In this document: positions 5,651-61,499 of the stretch, one piece after another | How the letters are laid out: each line of letters starts with the position of its first letter | How positions within the stretch are numbered: the stretch's first letter is position 1 | From: Macrostomum hystrix | Taxonomy: Eukaryota > Animalia > Platyhelminthes | Reading direction: 5' to 3' | Assembly: GCA_950097015.1 (NCBI GenBank) | Contig: CATNEN010000027.1 | Coordinates: 372,001 to 436,000, forward strand | Length of the DNA stretch: 64,000 nt | The notes under the pieces: model-generated | Databases searched by the model: none | What the model was told of the DNA's origin: nothing | The model's input: the letters and a program-made list of their open reading frames with translations, nothing else | Translations under genes and position numbers: made by a program

Positions 5651-8600
5651 TCTGGCCTGTGATGAGCAGCTCAATTGGATAATGATCGCTCACTTCCTCG
5701 GCCTGGAAGTTGGGTTATTGGGTCATTGCAGTGCTTTTCTCAGCTAATACGGCAGTAACGTATATTTAGCAGATATCCACAGCTCACCACTGTGCTGTTA
5801 AGCTTGAAGGCGCTGTCAAAGCGAAACACGCTGGCGGATGCAGCATCTATGGCAGACATGAGGCCTGGTCCCGCGGCCAGCATGTGGTCATATAGGCAGG
5901 AGGTTCGCAGCATCGTGGTCTCCATGCAGGCTGTGATGAACCAGGTTAAGTTACTGTCGCGCACTAGCTGCAGGTTGGTCTTCTGTTGCCGACTGAGATA
6001 AGTGCAGTCGGCGTTGAAGTCGCCAACAATGAGAACATTCTGTGAAAGATTGTTAATAAATTGCCTATAACACCCACAATGGAAAATAATCGGTTTCCAA
6101 AGAGCTTCGGACTCGTGACTTTAAGGTCGGAGTTCAATTCTTGACTAAAACATAAAACAATTTATGTCCTCCAGCATTATATAGCTGGGGTTATTGAGGG
6201 TGGGAATGGCGTTGTCCATGGACAGGACTGAAGAGCGTACGTTGGCTCCAGATGTGCCGCGCAATAGCTGCGGCTGTGCTGTCTTATAAATTCGCAAAGC
6301 TTTTGCCGCCGTTAGAACAGTTTATTCTCATCCTTTAAACTTCACGTTTCAAATTGCAAAACTTGCATTAAAGTTGCCTTCATTCTTGCTTTATCTACGA
6401 GTAATTCGACTTCACTAAACTACCCAAGAAATCAAATTAAACTTTCCAATTCTAGGGAAAGACAAGAAAAGTAAACGAGCTAGAATGAGATCAAATAGAG
6501 AAATATTTCTATGGCCGAGAGGATTATACATGAGTTGCCTGTTACCTGGCTGATGGTCGACTACCGCCAAATGACGTAGTCATTGCCCATATCAAATACC
6601 ATCATCACGATACTATCCTGTCAAGCATGAAGCAGGGCCCATTAGACTGACCTCATTTTGCCAGGCGGCTCTGGCTGCCAGCTGAACCGAGTGCAGAGCC
6701 TGAAGCTCGTTGAAGACGTCTCGTGGCGATGAGTGCAGACCGAGGACGCCGAAGGTTGTCATCTTGACTTGGATAATTCAGGGAGAGGACTTTGTTATTT
6801 TATCTATTTGGTTGCCATGGAAATGCACTGAATGCATGCATTTATCTATCGCGCTACTCACGCGCTCCCCGCACGTGAAACAGGGCGCCAAACGGTGGCC
6901 GCTCGAAGCGGTCCTGCGGATCATCGTACTGATAGGTGCCGGCCAGAGTGAAGATGGACTCCCTGCGGAGGGGGGAACAGATTCTGGGTCAGCTGAATCG
7001 ACAGAATTTCCTACTCGCCAAATAACACACCAGTGCTTACAGTCTCATGAAATTCTGTCTAATTCTTTCGGAATCGTTACTACGAGTAACATAAATATTA
7101 CTTGCAGGAGGGCTGCGGGTTACGGCACATCATTTGGTGAAAGTATAGAGCCGCAGCTAGCGAGGAGGCAAATTCTACTTCAGTAGTATACACAATCCAC
7201 AGACCCACACAAACGCACACAGGTGTGTACATATGCCCTTACTCAGGGCAGAGTATACTTTCTTTTATTGTGTCTTGGAGGTTGGCCATCAAGGGCGTAA
7301 ATTGTACGACCAACCCCAGATGAATGTGGCCTCGTCGAGAATCGAGCTCAGGGACCTTGGTGCGAGAGGCAAACGCCTTAGACCGCTCTGCCACCGACCC
7401 GGACCAACCCCTTCGGCATTGTTTGTCCGTATCCCATTGTTTCAGACAACTCATACCTGTTCTATGTTCTATTATTACCTCATATTACAACCTATTTCAA
7501 ATAAGAGGTTGTACGAGCGTAGCCTAGTGGTTAGGGTGTCGGACTCACAACTTGAAGGTCGGGGGTTCGATTCCCGACTCCACTGAAACAATTTGTGTCC
7601 TTTAGCAAGGCCCTTAACTCTGCATTGCTTCAGTTCACCCAGCTTTTAAATGGGTACCAGCATTAGCTGGGATTATTGAAGGTGGGTGTGGCGTCCTCCC
7701 AGTCCATGGACTGTACGCAGCCTTCAGATGCGCCGCGCAATAGCTGCGGCTGTGCTGTCGGCTGCACATGTGGCCCGAATGGGGCAGGTGTAATAAATTC
7801 TAATTACTAGTTATTATCACTTTTCTATGGAATTGTGTCGCTTGAGCCTTTCCTGTCCTATCAGGTAAGTAAATGTATTCCAAGTTCCAGTTGATTTTTT
7901 CTCTGTCACCAGTCCGTGAAATCTAAGAGTATACTAAATGCACTTTAAGTGAGGATTCACCTGTAGAAAAAGGCGTACTGCTCTTTTGAGCTCGTGCGGC
8001 CTAGCCGGTCGCTGATGGCCATTGCGTAACGATTCGCCGCGCCAACTCTGTGGTTGAGCTGATCCAGGAGGCTGACTATCGCCCGGCCTGTGGCATCCCG
8101 GATCTCCATGATGAACACCAGATCGTAGCGTTCCAGCGTCTGCGGGTTGGGCCAGACATGGAATCCGACATGCGGAGACTTTCGAACTCAACAACACGGG
8201 CCAACTTTTTGTTGCGCGTCTTTTGAAACAAGAATCATGTCACCATGCAGCTCTTCAGACCGTCGAGATATTCAATGGTTCTGACCGAAGGTCACATTTT
8301 TCTCATAAGCGCTAGTGCATTTCCTGCACCCCTATACACGAATTAGCACTGCGCCTCAGTGCGGCCTTGCCAGGCCTTTAAACTTTATCAGCATGTCACC
8401 CGAATGTGCCTGCATCATCTCCGTCTTCGGTGGTCACCTAACTTTATCTAAACGGACTGCTAGACCGTAAAGGGCTACAACAGGTGGAACTAGGCCACTA
8501 TCGACACCGTGACGCGAATTTCTTCAATTTCACTGATCAAGCCAAAATATTCGGCGCAGCTCAACCACAGGACACTCGTCTAGTCTGCCAACCAATCAGT

Positions 8601-19135: not shown

Positions 19136-19744
19136 GGACGGTTGCTAGGGACGGTTGCTAAGGCCCTCTTCACCCCAAAAATAGCTGTCAGTGTTGTGTA
19201 CTCTAACACTCTCAAACTCTAAGGCCGATTTTTGTAGTTCCTATCACATTTATCCCTTGTGAGCCCATCTCTATTTGCAAGCTCGATTTAAACTGAAAAG
19301 TTTTTTTGCCCACTAAGCGTTTGTTCAAAGTTACTTTTTTTCTCTTCGTGTGAATGTCTCCATTTTATAAATGCTCCGATTTTTTTCTTCACAATCAATT
19401 ATCTCGTTTGCCCCCAATGTCTCAAAAATTGTACTTGTACTTATTCACCTATTTTCTTAACTGAATTCAATTATCGTTGACACCTTTCAGACCCTCGAGC
19501 TTGTGCTCAAAAATGGGTTGAGTCGTTTCGTCGATGCTCAACAGAAAGCAGCTCCCGTCTTTCCCATTGCAAATGGGAAGTTGTGACCCCTACTACTTTG
19601 CTACAAATTTTCCGTGACACTTTTCAAACGATCCTTATCCTGGTTGGTCGATGGTTCGATTTCCCTCCCTGTACAAATCGCTAGATCCTCTAGTTCGAAC
19701 CGGCTACGAGTCTTTATGAAAATTACTTGGACTGCTTAGACTCC

Positions 19745-20490
19745 ATAACCATTGAGTGGATTCCACCATCCATGACCATAGAGTGGATTCCATCATCCAT
19801 GACCATAGAGTGGATTCCATCATGACCATAGAGTGGATTCCATCATCCATGACCATAGAGTGGATTCCATCATCCATGACCATTGAGTGGATTCCATCAT
19901 CCATGACCATAGAGTGGATTCCATCATTCATGACCATAGAGTGGATTCCATCATCCATGACCATAGAGTGGATTCTATCATCTATGACCATTGAGTGGAT
20001 TCTATCATCCTTGACCATAGAGTGGATTCCATCATCCATGACCATAGAGTGGATTCTATCATCCATGACCATAGAGTGGATTCCATCATCCATGACCATA
20101 GAGTGGATTCCATCATCCATGACCATAGAGTGGATTCCATCATCCATGACCATAGAGTGGATTCTATCATCCATGACCATAGAGTGGATTCTATCATCCA
20201 TGACCATAGAGTGGATTCTATCATCCATGACCATAGAGTGGATTCCATCATCCATGACCATAGAGTGGATTCTATCATCTATGACCATTGAGTGGATTCT
20301 ATCATCTATGACCATAGAGTGGATTCTATCATCCATGACCATAGAGTGGATTCCACCATCCATGACCATAGAGTGGATTCCATCATCTATGACCATTGAG
20401 TGGATTCTATCATCTATGACCATTGAGTGGATTCCACCATCCATGACCATAGAGTGGATTCCATCATCCATGACCATAGAGTGGATTCCA
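19745..20490. repeat. Minisatellite, 27-bp unit CATCCATGACCATAGAGTGGATTCCAT (about 27 copies)
   Basis: Direct inspection. Confidence 0.95.
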
Positions 20491-21654: not shown

Positions 21655-21890
21655 GATAAAGAGACAAGCAAACAGAGTGTGAGAGAAGGAGAGAGAGGGA
21701 GAGTGAGAGAGGGAGAGTGAGAGAGAGGGAGAGAGAGGGAGAGAGGGAGAGAGAGGGAGAGAGGGAGAGAGAGGGAGAGAGGGAGAGAGAGTGAGAGAGG
21801 GAGAGTGAGAGAGAGGGAGAGAGAGGGAGAGAGGGATCAGAGAGGGAGAGAGGGAGAGAGTGGGAGAGAGAGCGGGAGAGAGGAGAGAGG
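21655..21890. repeat. (GA)n/GGGA polypurine microsatellite
   Basis: Direct inspection. Confidence 0.95.
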
Positions 21891-21946
21891 ACACTGCCCT
21901 TTGAATTTCAAAAATCTAATGTTGGAATCGATTCCGATATGTATCG

Positions 21947-22056
21947 AAAAAATTGAAATCAGGATTCGAACCAAGGCAACTCCAGACGCGTTTCGCTCTT
22001 ATTGGAGCTCATCAGTAGAGTCTAGCCTAGCGCTCTAGCCATTAGGCTATAGGCGC
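21947..22056 (-). ncRNA. Pol III-type tRNA-like cassette carrying a type I minimal hammerhead ribozyme
   Basis: Minus strand in order: A box TAGCCTAATGG (22049-22039); stem I 5' GACTCTA; core CTGATGA (22015-22009); stem II GCTC-CAATAA-GAGC; GAAA (21994-21991); palindromic stem III ACGCGT with GUC cleavage triplet ending at 21985; stem I 3' TGGAGTT; B box GGTTCGAATCC (21972-21962); T6 terminator (21952-21947). Confidence 0.85.
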
Positions 22057-22144
22057 TTGTTCAAATCCAGCTTTCAACCTCAACATATCGTAATCGATTC
22101 GGCAGCGCCCCGCAACTCAATCCACACTCACTCAACTCCTCTCC

Positions 22145-22565
22145 GAGAGAGAGGGAGAGAGAGGGAGAGAGAGGGAGAGAGAGGGAGGGAGAGGGAGAGA
22201 GGGAGAGAGAGGGAGAGAGAGGGAGAGAGAGGGAGAAAGAGAGGGAGAGAGAGGGAGGGAGAGAGGGAGAAAGGGAGAGAGAGGGAGAAAGAGAGTGAGA
22301 GAGAGGGAGGGAGAGGGAGAGAGGGAGAGAGAGGGAGGGAGAGGGAGAGAGAGGGAGAAAGAGAGGGAGAGAGGGAGAGAGGGAGAGAGAGGGAAAGAGA
22401 GGGAGAGAGAGGGAGAGAGAGGGAGAGAGGGAGAGAGAGGGAGAGAGGGAGAGAGGGAGAGAGAGGGAAAGAGAGGGAGAGAGAGGGAGAGAGGGAGAGA
22501 GAGGGAGAGAGGGAGAGAGGGAGAGAGAGGGAGAAAGAGAGGTAGAGAGAGGGAGGGAGAAAGAG
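22145..22565. repeat. (GA)n/GGGA polypurine microsatellite
   Basis: Direct inspection. Confidence 0.95.
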
Positions 22566-23104: not shown

Positions 23105-23570
23105 AAAACTACTGTTCTTAGCTGTTAGATACTGTTCTCATCTGTTAGACACTGTTCTCATCTGTTAGACACTGTTCTCATCTGTTTGACACTGTTCTTA
23201 GCTGTTAGACTCTGTTCTCAGCTGTTAGACACTGTTCTCATCTGTTAGACACTGTTCTCATCTGTTTGACACTGTTCTCATCTGTTAGACACTGTTCTCA
23301 TCTGTTAGACACTGTTCTCATCTGTTAGACACTGTTCTCATCTGTTAGACTCTGTTCTCATCTGTTAGACACTGTTCTCATCTGTTAGACACTGTTCTCA
23401 TCTGTTAGACACTGTTCTCATCTGTTAGACTCTGTTCTCATCTGTTAGACTCTGTTCTCGTCTGTTAGACACTGTTCTCATCTGTTAGACTCTGTTCTCA
23501 TCTGTTAGACACTGTTCTCATCTGTTAGACTCTGTTCTCGTCTGTTAGACACTATTCTCATCTGTTCTCA
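23105..23570. repeat. Minisatellite, 20-bp unit CTGTTAGACACTGTTCTCAT (about 23 copies)
   Basis: Direct inspection. Confidence 0.95.
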
Positions 23571-24569
23571 TCTCTTGCACTTTAAGCGCCAAGTTGTTGA
23601 TTAGAATTTTGTCAAACTATCGTGTGTCTGGTTCAGGCTCTGGCCAGTCAGCATTTATCATCGGAGTCAGGATTCTCTGCCTTACTAGGCAATCCCCATA
23701 TATTGTTATACTCGTACATCTGCTTTTTAATTATTAATTAGGCTGGGGAATTGAAGCTGTCTTGAGAGAGTGAGGTTGAAAGCTGGTGCGACGTCTAAAT
23801 AAATCCCAATTCCCAGTTTTTTCCAAGACACGTGAAATCGACTCTATGGCGGTAACTAAAAACACGGCCGCCAAGACTGAGTGTGGGCTGAGCTGTCACA
23901 GCTGTCACGAATGACTGATTGGTATCTGATTGTATCCCTGTACTCTCTCCAAGTCCTCCCATGGGCTTTTTTGTTTGAGAATAAATGCTTCGCCAATACC
24001 TCCCAATGGGATAATATCCCAAGCCTTCCGAAAGCAATCCTTGTCACGGTCAATATAATGTCACGGCAGTTTGCCTGCTGCCAGTTTGGGTCACCGGTCT
24101 GTCAGCTTGGCCATTTTGATTGAGCTCATTTATCGACTCATGCTTTCCCTAGTGCTCAAAGCGAGCCACTTTTCTGGCGCGCCTTTTCACTTTTTTTTCT
24201 ACGACCCTAGCAACGGTGAGGCGGACTCTTCTCAGAATTCAATATGGGTCTGAGAAACATTGCCAACTATTTTATTGACTTATTGACTGTAAGAAAAATT
24301 GACAGGCATAAAATTTATAAATCAAGCCTTTATAAATGTAGCCCAAACTCCAGTCTTGAGGACTTTTCAGATTCAGTCACTTCAACAATGTCCAATGCAG
24401 CACAATGTAACTTAAGGCTTCAACGAGCATTTCTCTCTAAATTGTGAATTTTTTCTTTGTTGAAAAGAAATGGTGACTTTGGCAATGCAGATTTCAACGA
24501 TAGGCAAGGATACTTGCAATGATATTTGGAAATTTAAGAACTCCGGTATGAGTACAGCACAGCATTGAA

Positions 24570-26110
24570 TAACTGGATGAGTACACTATTTAATGACTGG
24601 ATGAGTACACTATTTAATGACAGGATGAGTACAGTACTGAATGACAGGATGAGTACACTATTTAATGACAGGATGAGTACACTATTTAATGACTGTATGA
24701 GTACAGTACTGAATGACTGGATGAGTACAGTACTGAATGACAGGATGAGTACACTATTTAATGACAGGATGAGTACAGTACTGAATGACAGGATGAGTAC
24801 ACTATTTAATGACAGGATGAGTACACTATTTAATGACTGTATGAGTACAGTACTGAATGACAGGATGAGTACACTATTTAATGACTGGATGAGTACACTA
24901 TTTAATGACTGGATGAGTACACTATTTAATGACAGGATGAGTACAGTACTGAATGACAGGATGAGTACACTATTTAATGACTGGATGAGTACACTATTTA
25001 ATGACTGGATGAGTACACTATTTAATGACTGGATGAGTACACTATTTAATGACAGGATGAGTACAGTACTGAATGACAGGATGAGTACAGTACTGAATGA
25101 CAGGATGAGTACACTATTTAATGACAGGATGAGTACAGTACTGAATGACAGGATGAGTACACTATTTAATGACTGGATGAGTACAGTACTGAATGACAGG
25201 ATGAGTACACTATTTAATGACTGGATGAGTACACTATTTTATGACAGGATGAGTACAGTACTGAATGACAGGATGAGTACACTATTTAATGACTGGATGA
25301 GTACACTATTTAATGACTGGATGAGTACACTATTTAATGACTGGATGAGTACACTATTTAATGACTGGATGAGTACACTATTTAATGACTGGATGAGTAC
25401 AACATTTAATGACAGGATGAGTACAGTACTGAATGACAGGATGAGTACAGTACTGAATGACAGGATGAGTACAGTACTGAATGACAGGATGAGTACACTA
25501 TTTAATGACAGGATGAGTACAGTACTGAATGACAGGATGAGTACACTATTTAATGACAGGATGAGTACAGTACTGAATGACTGCATGAGTACACTATTTA
25601 ATGACAGGATGAATACAGTACTGAATGACAGGATGAGTACAGTACTGAATGGCAGGATGAGTACACTATTTAATGACAGGATGAGTACAGTACTGAATGA
25701 CAGGATGAGTACAACATTTAATGACTGGATGAGTACACGATTTAATTACTGGATGAGTACAACATTTAATGACTGGATGAGTAAACTATTTAATGACTGG
25801 ATGAGTACAACATTTAATGACAGGATGAGTACAGTTCTGAATGACAGGATGAGCACACTATTTAATGACAGGATGAGTACATTACTGAATGACAGGATGA
25901 GTACAGTACTGAATGACAGGATGAGCACACTATTAAATGACAGGATGAGTACACTATTTAATGACAGGATGAGTACACTATTTAATGACTGGATGAGTAC
26001 ACTATTTAATGACTGGATGAGTACACTATTTAATGACTGGATGAGTACACTATTTAATGACTGGATGAGTACAACATTTAATGACAGGATGAGTACAGTT
26101 CTGAATGAAT
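24570..26110. repeat. Minisatellite, 24-bp unit with two interspersed variants (GAGTACACTATTTAATGAC(T/A)GGAT and GAGTACAGTACTGAATGACAGGAT), about 64 copies
   Basis: Direct inspection; explains ORF 24565-26244. Confidence 0.95.
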
Positions 26111-34824: not shown

Positions 34825-35430
34825 TGAGCAGTTGCTCAGAGTCACAGCTTGAGCAGTAGCTCAGAGTCATAGTTTGAGCAGTAGCTCAGAGTCACAGCTT
34901 GAGCAGTTGCTCAGAGTCATAGCTTGAGCAGTTGCTCAGAGTCATAGTTTGAGCAGTAGCTCAGAGTCACAGCTTGAGCAGTTGCTCAGAGTCATAGTTT
35001 GAGCAGTAGCTCAGAGTCACAGCTTGAGCAGTTGCTCAGAGTCACAGCTTGAGCAGTTGCTCAGATTCACAGCTTGAGCAGTAGCTCAGATTCACAGCTT
35101 GAGCAGTTGCTTAGAGTCACAGCTTGAGCAGTTGCTCAGATTCACAGCTTGAGCAGTTGCTCAGATTCACAGCTTGAGCAGTTGCTCAGAGTCACAGCTT
35201 GAGCAGTTGCTCAGAGTCACAGCTTGAGCAGTTGCTCAGAGTCACAGCTTGAGCAGTTGCTCAGAGTCACAGCTTGAGCAGTTGCTCAGAGTCACAGCTT
35301 GAGCAGTTGCTCAGAGTCACAGCTTGAGCAGTTGCTCAGAGTCATAGCTTGAGCAGTTGCTCAGATTCACAGCTTGAGCAGTTGCTCAGATTCACAGCTT
35401 GAGCAGTTGCTCAGAGTCATAGCTTGAGCA
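34825..35430. repeat. Minisatellite, 25-bp unit GAGCAGTTGCTCAGAGTCACAGCTT (about 24 copies) containing the palindrome TGAGCA-GT-TGCTCA
   Basis: Direct inspection. Confidence 0.95.
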
Positions 35431-59895: not shown

Positions 59896-60906
59896 TGAGC
59901 GATCAGGAACTTCTATCTGATTCTATCAAGCCGCCAAAGCTACGAAACTGCTCCAGATGAACAGGCAGATGGACTGCGCCGAGGAACGTACGTTAGAATA
60001 AGCGATGAGCGGTACAACCTCGTTGTGGATGCTTAGAAAGAGGCGAGCGACCGGCTGATATCGCGCGCTGGCTGCAGCTCAACAAAAACACCGTCTACTC
60101 CATTCAGAAGCGATACGAGACGACAGGACAGCGAAATCGGCGTCCGCGTGGTGGAACTCGCGGCGCAAAGCTGGGCGAGGAACAGACAGAGTGGCTGGTG
60201 CAACATCTTGACTGGAACCAAATGATGACGCTGGCAGAGATGGCACGATCGGTACAAGGTAGATTTGAAGGTCTTCCAGTGAGCACTGCTACAATCAGTC
60301 GAGCTTTAGACAAGCAGCTTATCACCTTGAAATGTCTGAGCCGGGATGCCGACATTCCTGCAGCGCGCAATACTCCAGAGAATCGACTTCGAAGGCGCGA
60401 ATTCGCTCAATGGCTGATCGAATTGCCACCCTATCATCACCCTGTCTTCTTCGATGAAACAGGTTTTAATTTATGGACTCGAATGTCACAAGGGCGCAGC
60501 AGACGTGGGCAACGAGTGAGAAGGGTCGTTGTCGCTCAGCGAGGGGTGCAGGTGAATCTGGTACAGGCCGTGTCACCAACGGCAGGTCTTCTGCATAACA
60601 AGATTGTAGCAGTCACGATGACCGCAGAAAGATTTCAGACAGTTGTGGATGAGTTACTGGAGGTTGTAAGCAATCGGAACAACATCGGAGACGCTGACCA
60701 GATGCACATTGTGATGTGATGCCAGCCTGAAGTGTAGAGACCTGCCACCTCTGGACACTCCCCTGTGGCAGAGGCGGATTCTGGTGCTGCACAGGATTGC
60801 AGAGGAGGCCACTGGTGAGGTGACTCCTGCCAAATGCGGCGGCTGGTTCAGGCAGATGCTGCGACGAGTTCCGGTCTGCTTGGCAGGGCAGCCGATTGAT
60901 GACTGA
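59896..60906 (+). pseudogene. IS630/Tc1/mariner-superfamily transposase pseudogene
   Basis: HTH region (ADIARWLQLNKNTVYSI...RPRGG), VSTATISRAL, first Asp in VFFDETGF, second-Asp motif broken (IVM*), YSP.LNPIE region deleted, and C-terminal EEATGEVTPAKCGGWFRQM. Contains stops and frameshifts. Confidence 0.85.
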
Positions 60907-61499
60907 GTGGTGTTACGCTTTTTGCAAGTAACGCCGGACACTTTCTGTGCTGCACTGTTCCCTTTAATTGTTTGCATCTTGAGTTGCATTAAACTTTTGT
61001 TTACGCATATAGTTTAATTAACATTTTAATTAATCAAAGCGTAGAGTTGATAAAAAGCGTCAAAACAAGGACGCTGTACATTTTCTTCTGTACATACTAT
61101 ACTATACTGTATACTTAGTCTGGGCGCAAGGCGCAAAGTCAAAGGCGGTGGTTCCTAGTCGAGAGCCGAAAGGTATAAAAGGCAGAGTTAAGTATAAATT
61201 TGCTGTTGTTAAATTGCATATCAAAGTGAGCGCATATAGAGTTCTCACACGGTCGACGGGCCGAGATGGAATATACTTGTAATTACTTAACTCTATGCTG
61301 TATTGTCTGTTTTACTGCAGCCCTCCTCCTTTCTCATTATGGGCTTGGGACCAGACAATGGCGGAGTTGCTGCCAGTTTTACTGACTAGCAGTTTTACGG
61401 CTAAATGAGATCACAAAGAAAAACAGTAAGGTCAACTTTTAAAGAAAATTTAAATTGATTGGAAAAAAACTTTAAGCCACGTTAAGTTAAAGCTACTTA

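Follow-up and report, generated by a model that had tools for sequence, protein, structure and literature searches.

We found that a short unit in the Macrostomum hystrix genome contains a complete, intact type-I hammerhead ribozyme on the minus strand at 21962-22033 of the stretch of DNA analysed here (64,000 nucleotides of contig CATNEN010000027.1, hereafter the window). Along the minus strand the order of elements is A box, hammerhead, B box and a run of six T. We read the unit as belonging to a non-coding macrostomid repeat family in which a tRNA-derived split Pol III promoter is combined with a dimer-dependent type-I hammerhead, and to this reading we give a probability of roughly 55%. 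Judged from the letters, the novelty is the order of the modules, namely A box, hammerhead and B box; elements that unite a promoter with a ribozyme are already known from Schistosoma. The unit sits in a 254-bp island between two GA-rich arrays, and its features, given here along the minus strand from 5' to 3' and followed by two other repeats of the window, are these:

22145-22560: GA-rich microsatellite 5' of the unit (Tandem Repeats Finder)
22101-22139, minus strand: 5' flank common to contig X1, possible 5' end of the repeated unit
22083-22100: outer inverted repeat, upstream arm (repeat search, 17/18)
22059-22077: upstream arm of the inner inverted repeat (16/19), which places the B-box region in inverted form 5' of the A box
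22049-22039, minus strand: A box TAGCCTAATGG, near-perfect fit to the A-box consensus
22036-22049, minus strand: D-arm-like hairpin UAGCC-UAAU-GGCUA holding the A box (fold and alignment with SINE heads)
21962-22033, minus strand: type-I hammerhead, like Rfam HH9, two-part helix I included (Rfam, 38.7 bits)
22028-22025 and 21977-21974, minus strand: distal helix AGGC/GCCU, which follows a UA bulge and extends helix I
22022-22016 and 21984-21978, minus strand: helix I GACUCUA/UGGAGUU, seven pairs, two of them G-U
22015-22009, minus strand: catalytic core CUGAUGA (letters, HH9 alignment and pattern scan)
22008-22005 and 21998-21995, minus strand: helix II GCUC/GAGC, with loop CAAUAA at 22004-21999 (letters and HH9 alignment)
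21994-21991, minus strand: GAAA (read from the letters)
21991-21986, minus strand: helix III palindrome ACGCGU (energy evaluation, monomer versus duplex)
21987-21985, minus strand: GUC triplet, with predicted cleavage between 21985 and 21984 (letters and HH9 alignment)
21972-21962, minus strand: B box GGTTCGAATCC, perfect match to GGTTCGANTCC
21953-21971: inner inverted repeat, downstream arm, overlapping the B box (repeat search, 16/19)
21952-21947, minus strand: T6 run, candidate Pol III terminator, 9 nt downstream of the B box
21925-21942: outer inverted repeat, downstream arm (repeat search, 17/18)
21891-21924, minus strand: 3' flank beyond the outer repeat, common to contigs of other runs and species
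21681-21890: GA-rich microsatellite 3' of the unit, CT-rich on the strand of the element (Tandem Repeats Finder)
about 7505-7800, plus strand: ordinary tRNA-derived SINE, copy 1
about 62640-62380, minus strand: ordinary tRNA-derived SINE, copy 2

The hammerhead core and GUC site that a preliminary description had claimed for the minus strand were located part by part. All of the conserved type-I positions were found (CUGAUGA, GAAA, A15.1-U16.1, G10.1-C11.1 and the NUH triplet), and the three-helix layout is satisfied with an open-ended helix I (7 bp plus the 4-bp distal helix), a helix II of 4 bp and an intermolecular helix III. The best Rfam match was Hammerhead_HH9, with the full model covered and 38.7 bits scored where the gathering score is 52; searched locally, the region gave an E-value of 1.2e-8, and over all 64 kb of the window the value was 2.9e-6. 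No Rfam family passed its gathering threshold anywhere in the window, and HH9 stayed below its own mainly because the helix III of the model is deleted in the alignment. A pattern built from the element's own core and helix III matched once in the window, compared with 0.01 matches expected. Through a looser descriptor of core plus helix II, no other hammerhead site was detected in the window, and neither a second copy of the unit nor a second hammerhead was found in the 64 kb.

Helix III was said to be unable to close within one molecule, and the energies bear this out: forced intramolecular closure by the single A-U pair of ACGCGU gives +5.7 kcal/mol, whereas the 6-bp ACGCGU duplex between two molecules gives -8.9 kcal/mol. 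The dimer value refers to the helix III duplex alone, as the pairs of a double hammerhead cross and lie outside nested-structure energy rules. For the 8-nt helix III palindrome of Sj-alpha, the duplex value is -14.7 kcal/mol. When two molecules were cofolded, the minimum-energy dimer paired via the palindromic B-box region and not via helix III, which is uninformative on catalysis. In the canonical metazoan design of Cervera and de la Pena, helix I has about 6 bp and helix II has 4 bp (PMC4209133); helix III has 1-2 bp with a palindromic loop of 2-4 nt, and the ribozyme works as a dimer (PMC4209133, PMC7229834). The hammerheads of amphibian retrozymes show the same dimer behaviour (PMC7229834). 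As modelled, the window hammerhead fits this canonical dimer-type description. Dimer cleavage would need two separate transcripts here, because the copy is solitary.

The placing of the hammerhead between an A box and a B box with a T run behind them was confirmed for the boxes, the order and the T6 run, and the two boxes are 66 nt apart. In 128 kb (the window, both strands), the A-box pattern and the B-box pattern had four matches each; the two ordinary tRNA-derived SINE copies account for two of the exact B-box matches and for one A-box match. By a rough estimate from these box counts, same-strand A and B boxes would flank a given hammerhead by chance in about 3 cases in a million. TTTT is absent between 22103 and the T6 run.

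As for the tRNA-type nature of the cassette, the earlier claim stands in part. The A and B boxes are there, and the D-arm segment can be aligned to the heads of this genome's tRNA-derived SINEs, but no tRNA fold was recovered: ARAGORN at default settings found no tRNA in the unit, with introns allowed or not, and with introns allowed and thresholds lowered it gave implausible low-score models only. Rfam tRNA had no match on the minus strand of the unit. A tRNA-like reading of the plus strand was rejected (Rfam tRNA 12.8 bits, E 7.2, chance level); this match arises because the unit is quasi-palindromic. The motif CTAGGC after the D-arm segment lines up with the anticodon-stem strand of the SINEs, which agrees with the proposal that AGGC/GCCU is the tRNA anticodon stem. 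The assignment is reasonable but not unique, because a GGC/GCC distal helix is normal in an HH9-type helix I, and the four pairs could equally be that helix. The tRNA variable loop and the 5' strand of the T stem are absent from the unit, and therefore the 3' strand of the anticodon stem abuts the B box directly. In the reading preferred here, the hammerhead would occupy the place of a tRNA anticodon loop or intron.

The 18-bp inverted repeats described for the two ends of the unit were confirmed with a 17/18 match, as were the two GA microsatellites around it and the absence of a visible target-site duplication at the repeat ends, where the flanks read ...ATGTTG and GGCAGC.... In a check for a SINE tail, the CT-rich array after the unit was found to have a similar array before the unit. 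The outer 10 nt of the 18-nt repeat, GAATCGATTC, form a palindrome, so the outer repeat reads direct and inverted alike. The 157-nt minus-strand RNA folds with -55.6 kcal/mol (z -4.8 versus shuffles) into a closing stem made by the inner repeat, a D-like hairpin and the hammerhead arm, and the 176-nt fold of the plus strand has a z of -6.8. Considering the inner inverted repeat together with the outer one, the unit reads better, in the predicted fold, as a single long hairpin with two side arms, of which the repeat arms would be the base.

Contigs from four public runs were placed on 21891-22144. The related contigs are 91-99% identical to the window and come from runs whose labels name at least four organisms. 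Contig X1 (organism A, a DNA contig of 332 nt) matches 21891-22139 with three differences and leaves the window sequence at 22139/22140 for unrelated non-GA sequence absent from the window, which suggests that X1 may be another copy, with its 5' end near 22139. Contig X9 (organism C, probably an RNA run) has 157 nt and spans exactly 22103-21947 with two differences; it terminates at the last T of the T6 run (21947), through which the DNA contigs X1 and X11 continue. This end suggests Pol III termination, the library type being a guess and contig ends possibly being assembly artefacts. Record 2 of X10 (organism D) covers 21891-21960 with six differences (91% identity). Organism D also has the hammerhead core in other surroundings, between long self-complementary sequences, and in the 30-nt flanks of this second core no A or B box is visible. 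In a 151-nt contig of organism E, the core carries U4>C and helix III carries C15.2>U; the helix III change can still pair as G-U in the dimer. Considering the core change, not all copies are kept active.

Similarity in X1, X10 and X11 continues past the T6 run, so that part of the repeated unit would be missing from a Pol III transcript. On the other side, homology with X1 begins at 22139, about 90 nt upstream of the A box, and X9 begins 54 nt upstream of it. The first nucleotide of a classical SINE is also that of its transcript, and the A box follows about 10-20 nt downstream. A homology start some 90 nt upstream would be odd for a SINE.

Pattern scans revealed no copy in metagenomes and none in viral contigs. 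One match in the prokaryotic genomes, from a Gemmatimonadaceae MAG, was without helix II and in GC-rich surroundings, and was taken as chance. The protein-database search with the ORF read across the element gave no candidate copies. A 105 kb sample of Macrostomum lignano yielded neither a hammerhead nor anything matching the unit. An intronless Band_7 gene is located 2.8 kb from the unit, and its protein is 82% identical to that of M. lignano; after this species, the next Band_7 protein matches are from other flatworms. A look-up of the window's own Band_7 protein gave no existing record. When the Band_7 locus was compared with M. lignano, the coding region alone aligned (79% nucleotide identity) and the intergenic DNA was unalignable. 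The window contains no reverse transcriptase ORF of at least 120 aa, and a neighbouring Penelope reverse transcriptase, which the preliminary description proposed to look for, is unsupported within the window. A fragment of a DDE_3 (Tc1/mariner-type) transposase was found in the same window at 60198-60719.

Because the host is a flatworm, Schistosoma's elements Sm-alpha and Sj-alpha are the natural comparison. These SINE-like hammerhead elements were reportedly described by Ferbeyre in 1998 and by Laha in 2000. Sm-alpha is a SINE derived from tRNA-Gln (PMC2770079), apparently transcribed by Pol III (PMC2770079, PMC6765202), and its layout was described as promoter, then hammerhead (PMC6765202). 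For the comparison, about 240 kb of Schistosoma DNA were used, 142 kb of which were scanned with Rfam, yielding 13 Hammerhead_1 matches and three twister-P1 matches. Where the head of a Schistosoma copy is intact, an A box comes first, then a B box, then about 30 nt and then the hammerhead; the distance from the B box down to the ribozyme match is 42 nt, and a second Schistosoma family has the identical order of A, B and hammerhead.

The parallel with Sm-alpha drawn in the preliminary description is apt. Both hosts belong to the phylum Platyhelminthes, and in both cases tRNA-derived A and B boxes are linked to a type-I hammerhead in one unit. In both ribozymes, helix II has 4 bp and is capped by a 6-nt loop (CAAAUA in Schistosoma, CAAUAA in the window), helix I is in two parts, and helix III is palindromic and of the form GAAAC-GCG...GUC. 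They differ in the order of modules, the B box preceding the hammerhead in Schistosoma and following it in the window, and in helix III, which has 8 nt in Schistosoma and 6 nt in the window. The missing tRNA variable loop and 5' T-stem strand, the 18-nt and 19-nt inverted repeats, the T6 run after the B box and the GA flanks distinguish the window element. A MAFFT alignment shares only the box motifs and the ribozyme core positions. The Schistosoma elements have a high copy number and are often in tandem. The window has one copy and no tandem, and related contigs occur in several runs.

Hammerhead_HH9 (RF02275) is an intronic hammerhead of amniotes, related to the hammerheads of amphibian and trematode retroelements. 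Its helix II (GCUC/GAGC) is identical to that of the window element and its loop 2 is near-identical; its helix I likewise has 6-7 bp, then a bulge and then a GGC/GCC distal helix. The 3-bp stem and 5-nt loop of HH9 helix III are absent from the window element, and HH9 resides in a conserved vertebrate intron whereas the window element is a flatworm repeat.

With the non-LTR retrozymes of animals, the unit shares small non-coding size, a type-I hammerhead that needs dimers and self-paired RNA (PMC7229834). Retrozyme monomers are dispersed in genomes (bioRxiv 10.64898/2026.07.22.740005). Differently from retrozymes, the window contains no tandem repeat or second ribozyme, and therefore the release of unit-length or circular RNA from this locus is impossible; tRNA-type promoter boxes are not described in the retrozyme papers covered here (PMC7229834; bioRxiv 10.64898/2026.07.22.740005). 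In the minimal hammerhead of Penelope-like elements, helix I is short and helix II, with about 6 bp, is long (PMC4209133). This minimal type resembles the window hammerhead in the palindromic helix III and the dimer requirement, but in the window a 6-nt loop closes the 4-bp helix II, and helix I is long (7+4 bp) and bulged; moreover, no Penelope-like reverse transcriptase or terminal repeat is near the unit. The assignment to the Penelope-type minimal hammerhead was thus refuted, as the 4-bp helix II, the 6-nt loop and the bulged helix I are of the Schistosoma/HH9 type.

Cotten and Birnstiel reportedly engineered a ribozyme into the anticodon region of a tRNA gene for Pol III expression in 1989. 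Such engineered tRNA-embedded hammerheads also have the ribozyme between A and B boxes, but they are synthetic, cleave in trans and have a full tRNA fold, whereas the window element is natural, is predicted to cleave itself and has lost the tRNA fold. Full-text literature searches gave no example of a natural hammerhead at the anticodon or intron site of a tRNA.

For a promoter-driven repeat of the kind preferred here, we infer Pol III transcription, termination at T6, cleavage in dimers, retroposition and mobility from the sequence, and the steps might be as follows. TFIIIC would bind the A and B boxes, and the Pol III product would be an RNA free of T4 that ends at the T6 run and measures about 110 nt, with 157 nt as the upper limit. 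This RNA may adopt a Y shape composed of the closing stem, the D-arm-like hairpin and the hammerhead arm. A single molecule would be a poor catalyst because its helix III is ACGCGU alone; two transcripts could join via this palindrome into a double hammerhead. Each transcript would then be cut after GUC, between 21985 and 21984, with the A-box half separated from the B-box half, and the cut ends would be a 2',3'-cyclic phosphate and a 5'-OH. For copying, retroposition by a Penelope-like or LINE partner would be the most likely route. Functionally, such an element would be akin to Sm-alpha and Sj-alpha.

Several other explanations of the unit were weighed. It might be a solitary monomer, or the remains, of a non-LTR retrozyme or of a Penelope-associated hammerhead repeat, transcribed by read-through or by Pol II, with the boxes as an inherited remnant that plays no part as a promoter and the hairpin as the rod-like retrozyme fold; we regard this main rival as unlikely, yet as an explanation to be taken seriously. 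The repeated unit has at least 249 bp, which is inside the retrozyme range of 170-400 nt, it pairs strongly with itself (minus-strand z -4.8, plus-strand z -6.8), and its hammerhead is of the type-I dimer type as in animal retrozymes (PMC7229834), of which dispersed genomic monomers do occur (bioRxiv 10.64898/2026.07.22.740005). The core of organism D, box-free in its 30-nt flanks and with self-complementary surroundings, points the same way, as does the homology that passes beyond the predicted transcription start and the T6 run. However, a tandem partner or second hammerhead is missing in the window, tRNA-like promoters are unmentioned in the retrozyme papers covered here (PMC7229834; bioRxiv 10.64898/2026.07.22.740005), the X9 contig stops exactly at T6, and accident is an unlikely reason for a perfect B box, a near-perfect A box and a T6 run to have persisted in correct order and spacing. 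A chance assembly of motifs without biological unity is extremely improbable: Rfam scores under the curated thresholds and the lack of a tRNA fold would agree with it, but the hammerhead has an E-value of 2.9e-6 over the whole window, boxes would flank it at random in about 3 cases in a million by the rough estimate above, and near-identical contigs occur in several independent runs.

The outer repeats had been thought of as MITE-like termini, and a DNA transposon of the MITE or foldback kind, with the 18-bp repeats as its ends and a DDE transposase as its mover, would make the hammerhead and the tRNA-like segment incidental. The inverted repeats do look terminal (17/18, with an inner pair of 16/19), the size of 176 bp is small, and the DDE_3 transposase fragment lies elsewhere in the window at 60198-60719; the explanation is improbable nevertheless, considering that the repeat ends lack a target-site duplication, that the outer 10 nt of the repeat are merely palindromic and that the repeats are fully accounted for as stems of an RNA or DNA hairpin. 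Furthermore, contigs of other runs and species pass both repeat ends (21891-21924 and 22101-22139), and this continued similarity argues against a MITE bounded there. It is very doubtful that the unit is a small-RNA gene of the host, in which the hammerhead would cut a Pol III tRNA-like transcript into defined halves or a tRNA ligase would rejoin them. Near-identical copies, hinted to be many by the contigs of other runs, the core mutation in one copy of another species and the location inside a microsatellite all speak against a host gene, and the intergenic DNA is unalignable with M. lignano, so that orthologous conservation is not demonstrable. In favour of a host gene are the intact promoter and terminator signals, the position of the ribozyme at a tRNA intron site and the predicted product ends (2',3'-cyclic phosphate and 5'-OH), which the tRNA ligase RtcB is able to join; in vitro, this enzyme makes circles of retrozyme RNA (PMC7229834). 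Compared with all of these, a repeat family with a split Pol III promoter around a dimer-type hammerhead remains the reading we prefer.

Hammerhead-bearing retroelements are widespread in animals, and to our knowledge Sm-alpha of Schistosoma is the only well-known one with a Pol III promoter of its own. A nested ribozyme in a free-living, distantly branching flatworm would mean that the partnership of tRNA and hammerhead is old or recurrent. Cleavage would divide the promoter into its two halves at the RNA level, and this is relevant to how elements of this kind retain or forfeit their capacity to spread. The unit would be a natural counterpart of the tRNA-embedded ribozymes made by engineers. 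We might speculate further, with little confidence, that this is a natural family of tRNA-ribozyme genes, whose self-cleavage would give base-paired halves with 2',3'-cyclic phosphate and 5'-OH ends; by mimicking tRNA-splicing intermediates, these ends would let the element engage RtcB, perhaps also RNase P or RNase Z. If true, the halves could be re-ligated by RtcB, circularised or retroposed, and the family would provide a direct evolutionary link from tRNA splicing and ligation to the life cycle of animal hammerhead retroelements.

The following features were identified around the hammerhead unit, a minus-strand type-I hammerhead lying between an A box and a B box, and elsewhere in the window.

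About 7505-7800, plus strand: ordinary tRNA-derived SINE, copy 1, with A box, B box and the body common to both copies
19742-20490: minisatellite, period 27 bp
23111-23566: minisatellite, period 20 bp
24564-25000+: minisatellite, period 24 bp
34872-35405, plus strand: four hairpin units spaced by ~100-150 nt, weak matches to the mir-434 model
60198-60719, plus strand: fragmentary ORF carrying a DDE_3 (Tc1/mariner-type) transposase domain, matched at E 7e-8
61317-61373, minus strand: sub-threshold candidate for a type-P1 twister ribozyme
About 62640-62380, minus strand: SINE copy 2, A box diverged, B box and common body present

Tandem arrays were unusually abundant around the hammerhead unit. 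The three minisatellites were well preserved (matches of 89-94% across the three arrays), and all lay no more than 3 kb from the unit. The four hairpin units scored 27.7-40.5 bits against the mir-434 model, of which the gathering score is 100, and they probably represent a minisatellite whose repeats form hairpins, not a cluster of miRNAs.

The A box of the SINE copies (TAGCCTAGTGG, diverged in the 62640 copy) differed by one base from that of the hammerhead unit, but the remainder of the two elements was unrelated. The B box of the SINE copies was GGTTCGATTCC. The quasi-palindromic sequence of the hammerhead unit makes it resemble a tRNA on either strand: on the plus strand (22006-22071), the antisense of the core (AGCTCATCAGTAGAGT) resembled a tRNA D arm and, together with an inverted B-box copy at 22059-22068, gave a tRNA match, which was rejected as chance-level (12.8 bits, E 7.2).

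The twister candidate, with a whole-window E-value of 7.2e-5, scored 38.6 bits, where the model's gathering score is 67.2. Its conserved segments (GGUCCCAAGCCC and AAAGG..GGAGGG) and outer helices were intact and the model's first internal stem-loop was deleted; the transposase fragment was located ~600 bp upstream. In the Schistosoma comparison loci L003 and L004, twisters were found at 471-541 with 74 bits.

The same core was found in another species, in a contig from X10, a public sequencing run of organism D, aligned to 21980-22020, but in a different context. Its flanks were mutually complementary over at least 20 nt, making helix I much longer, and the 30-nt flanks contained no tRNA boxes. 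This core in a different context, with no boxes in those flanks, suggests that the ribozyme module is common to several repeat families.
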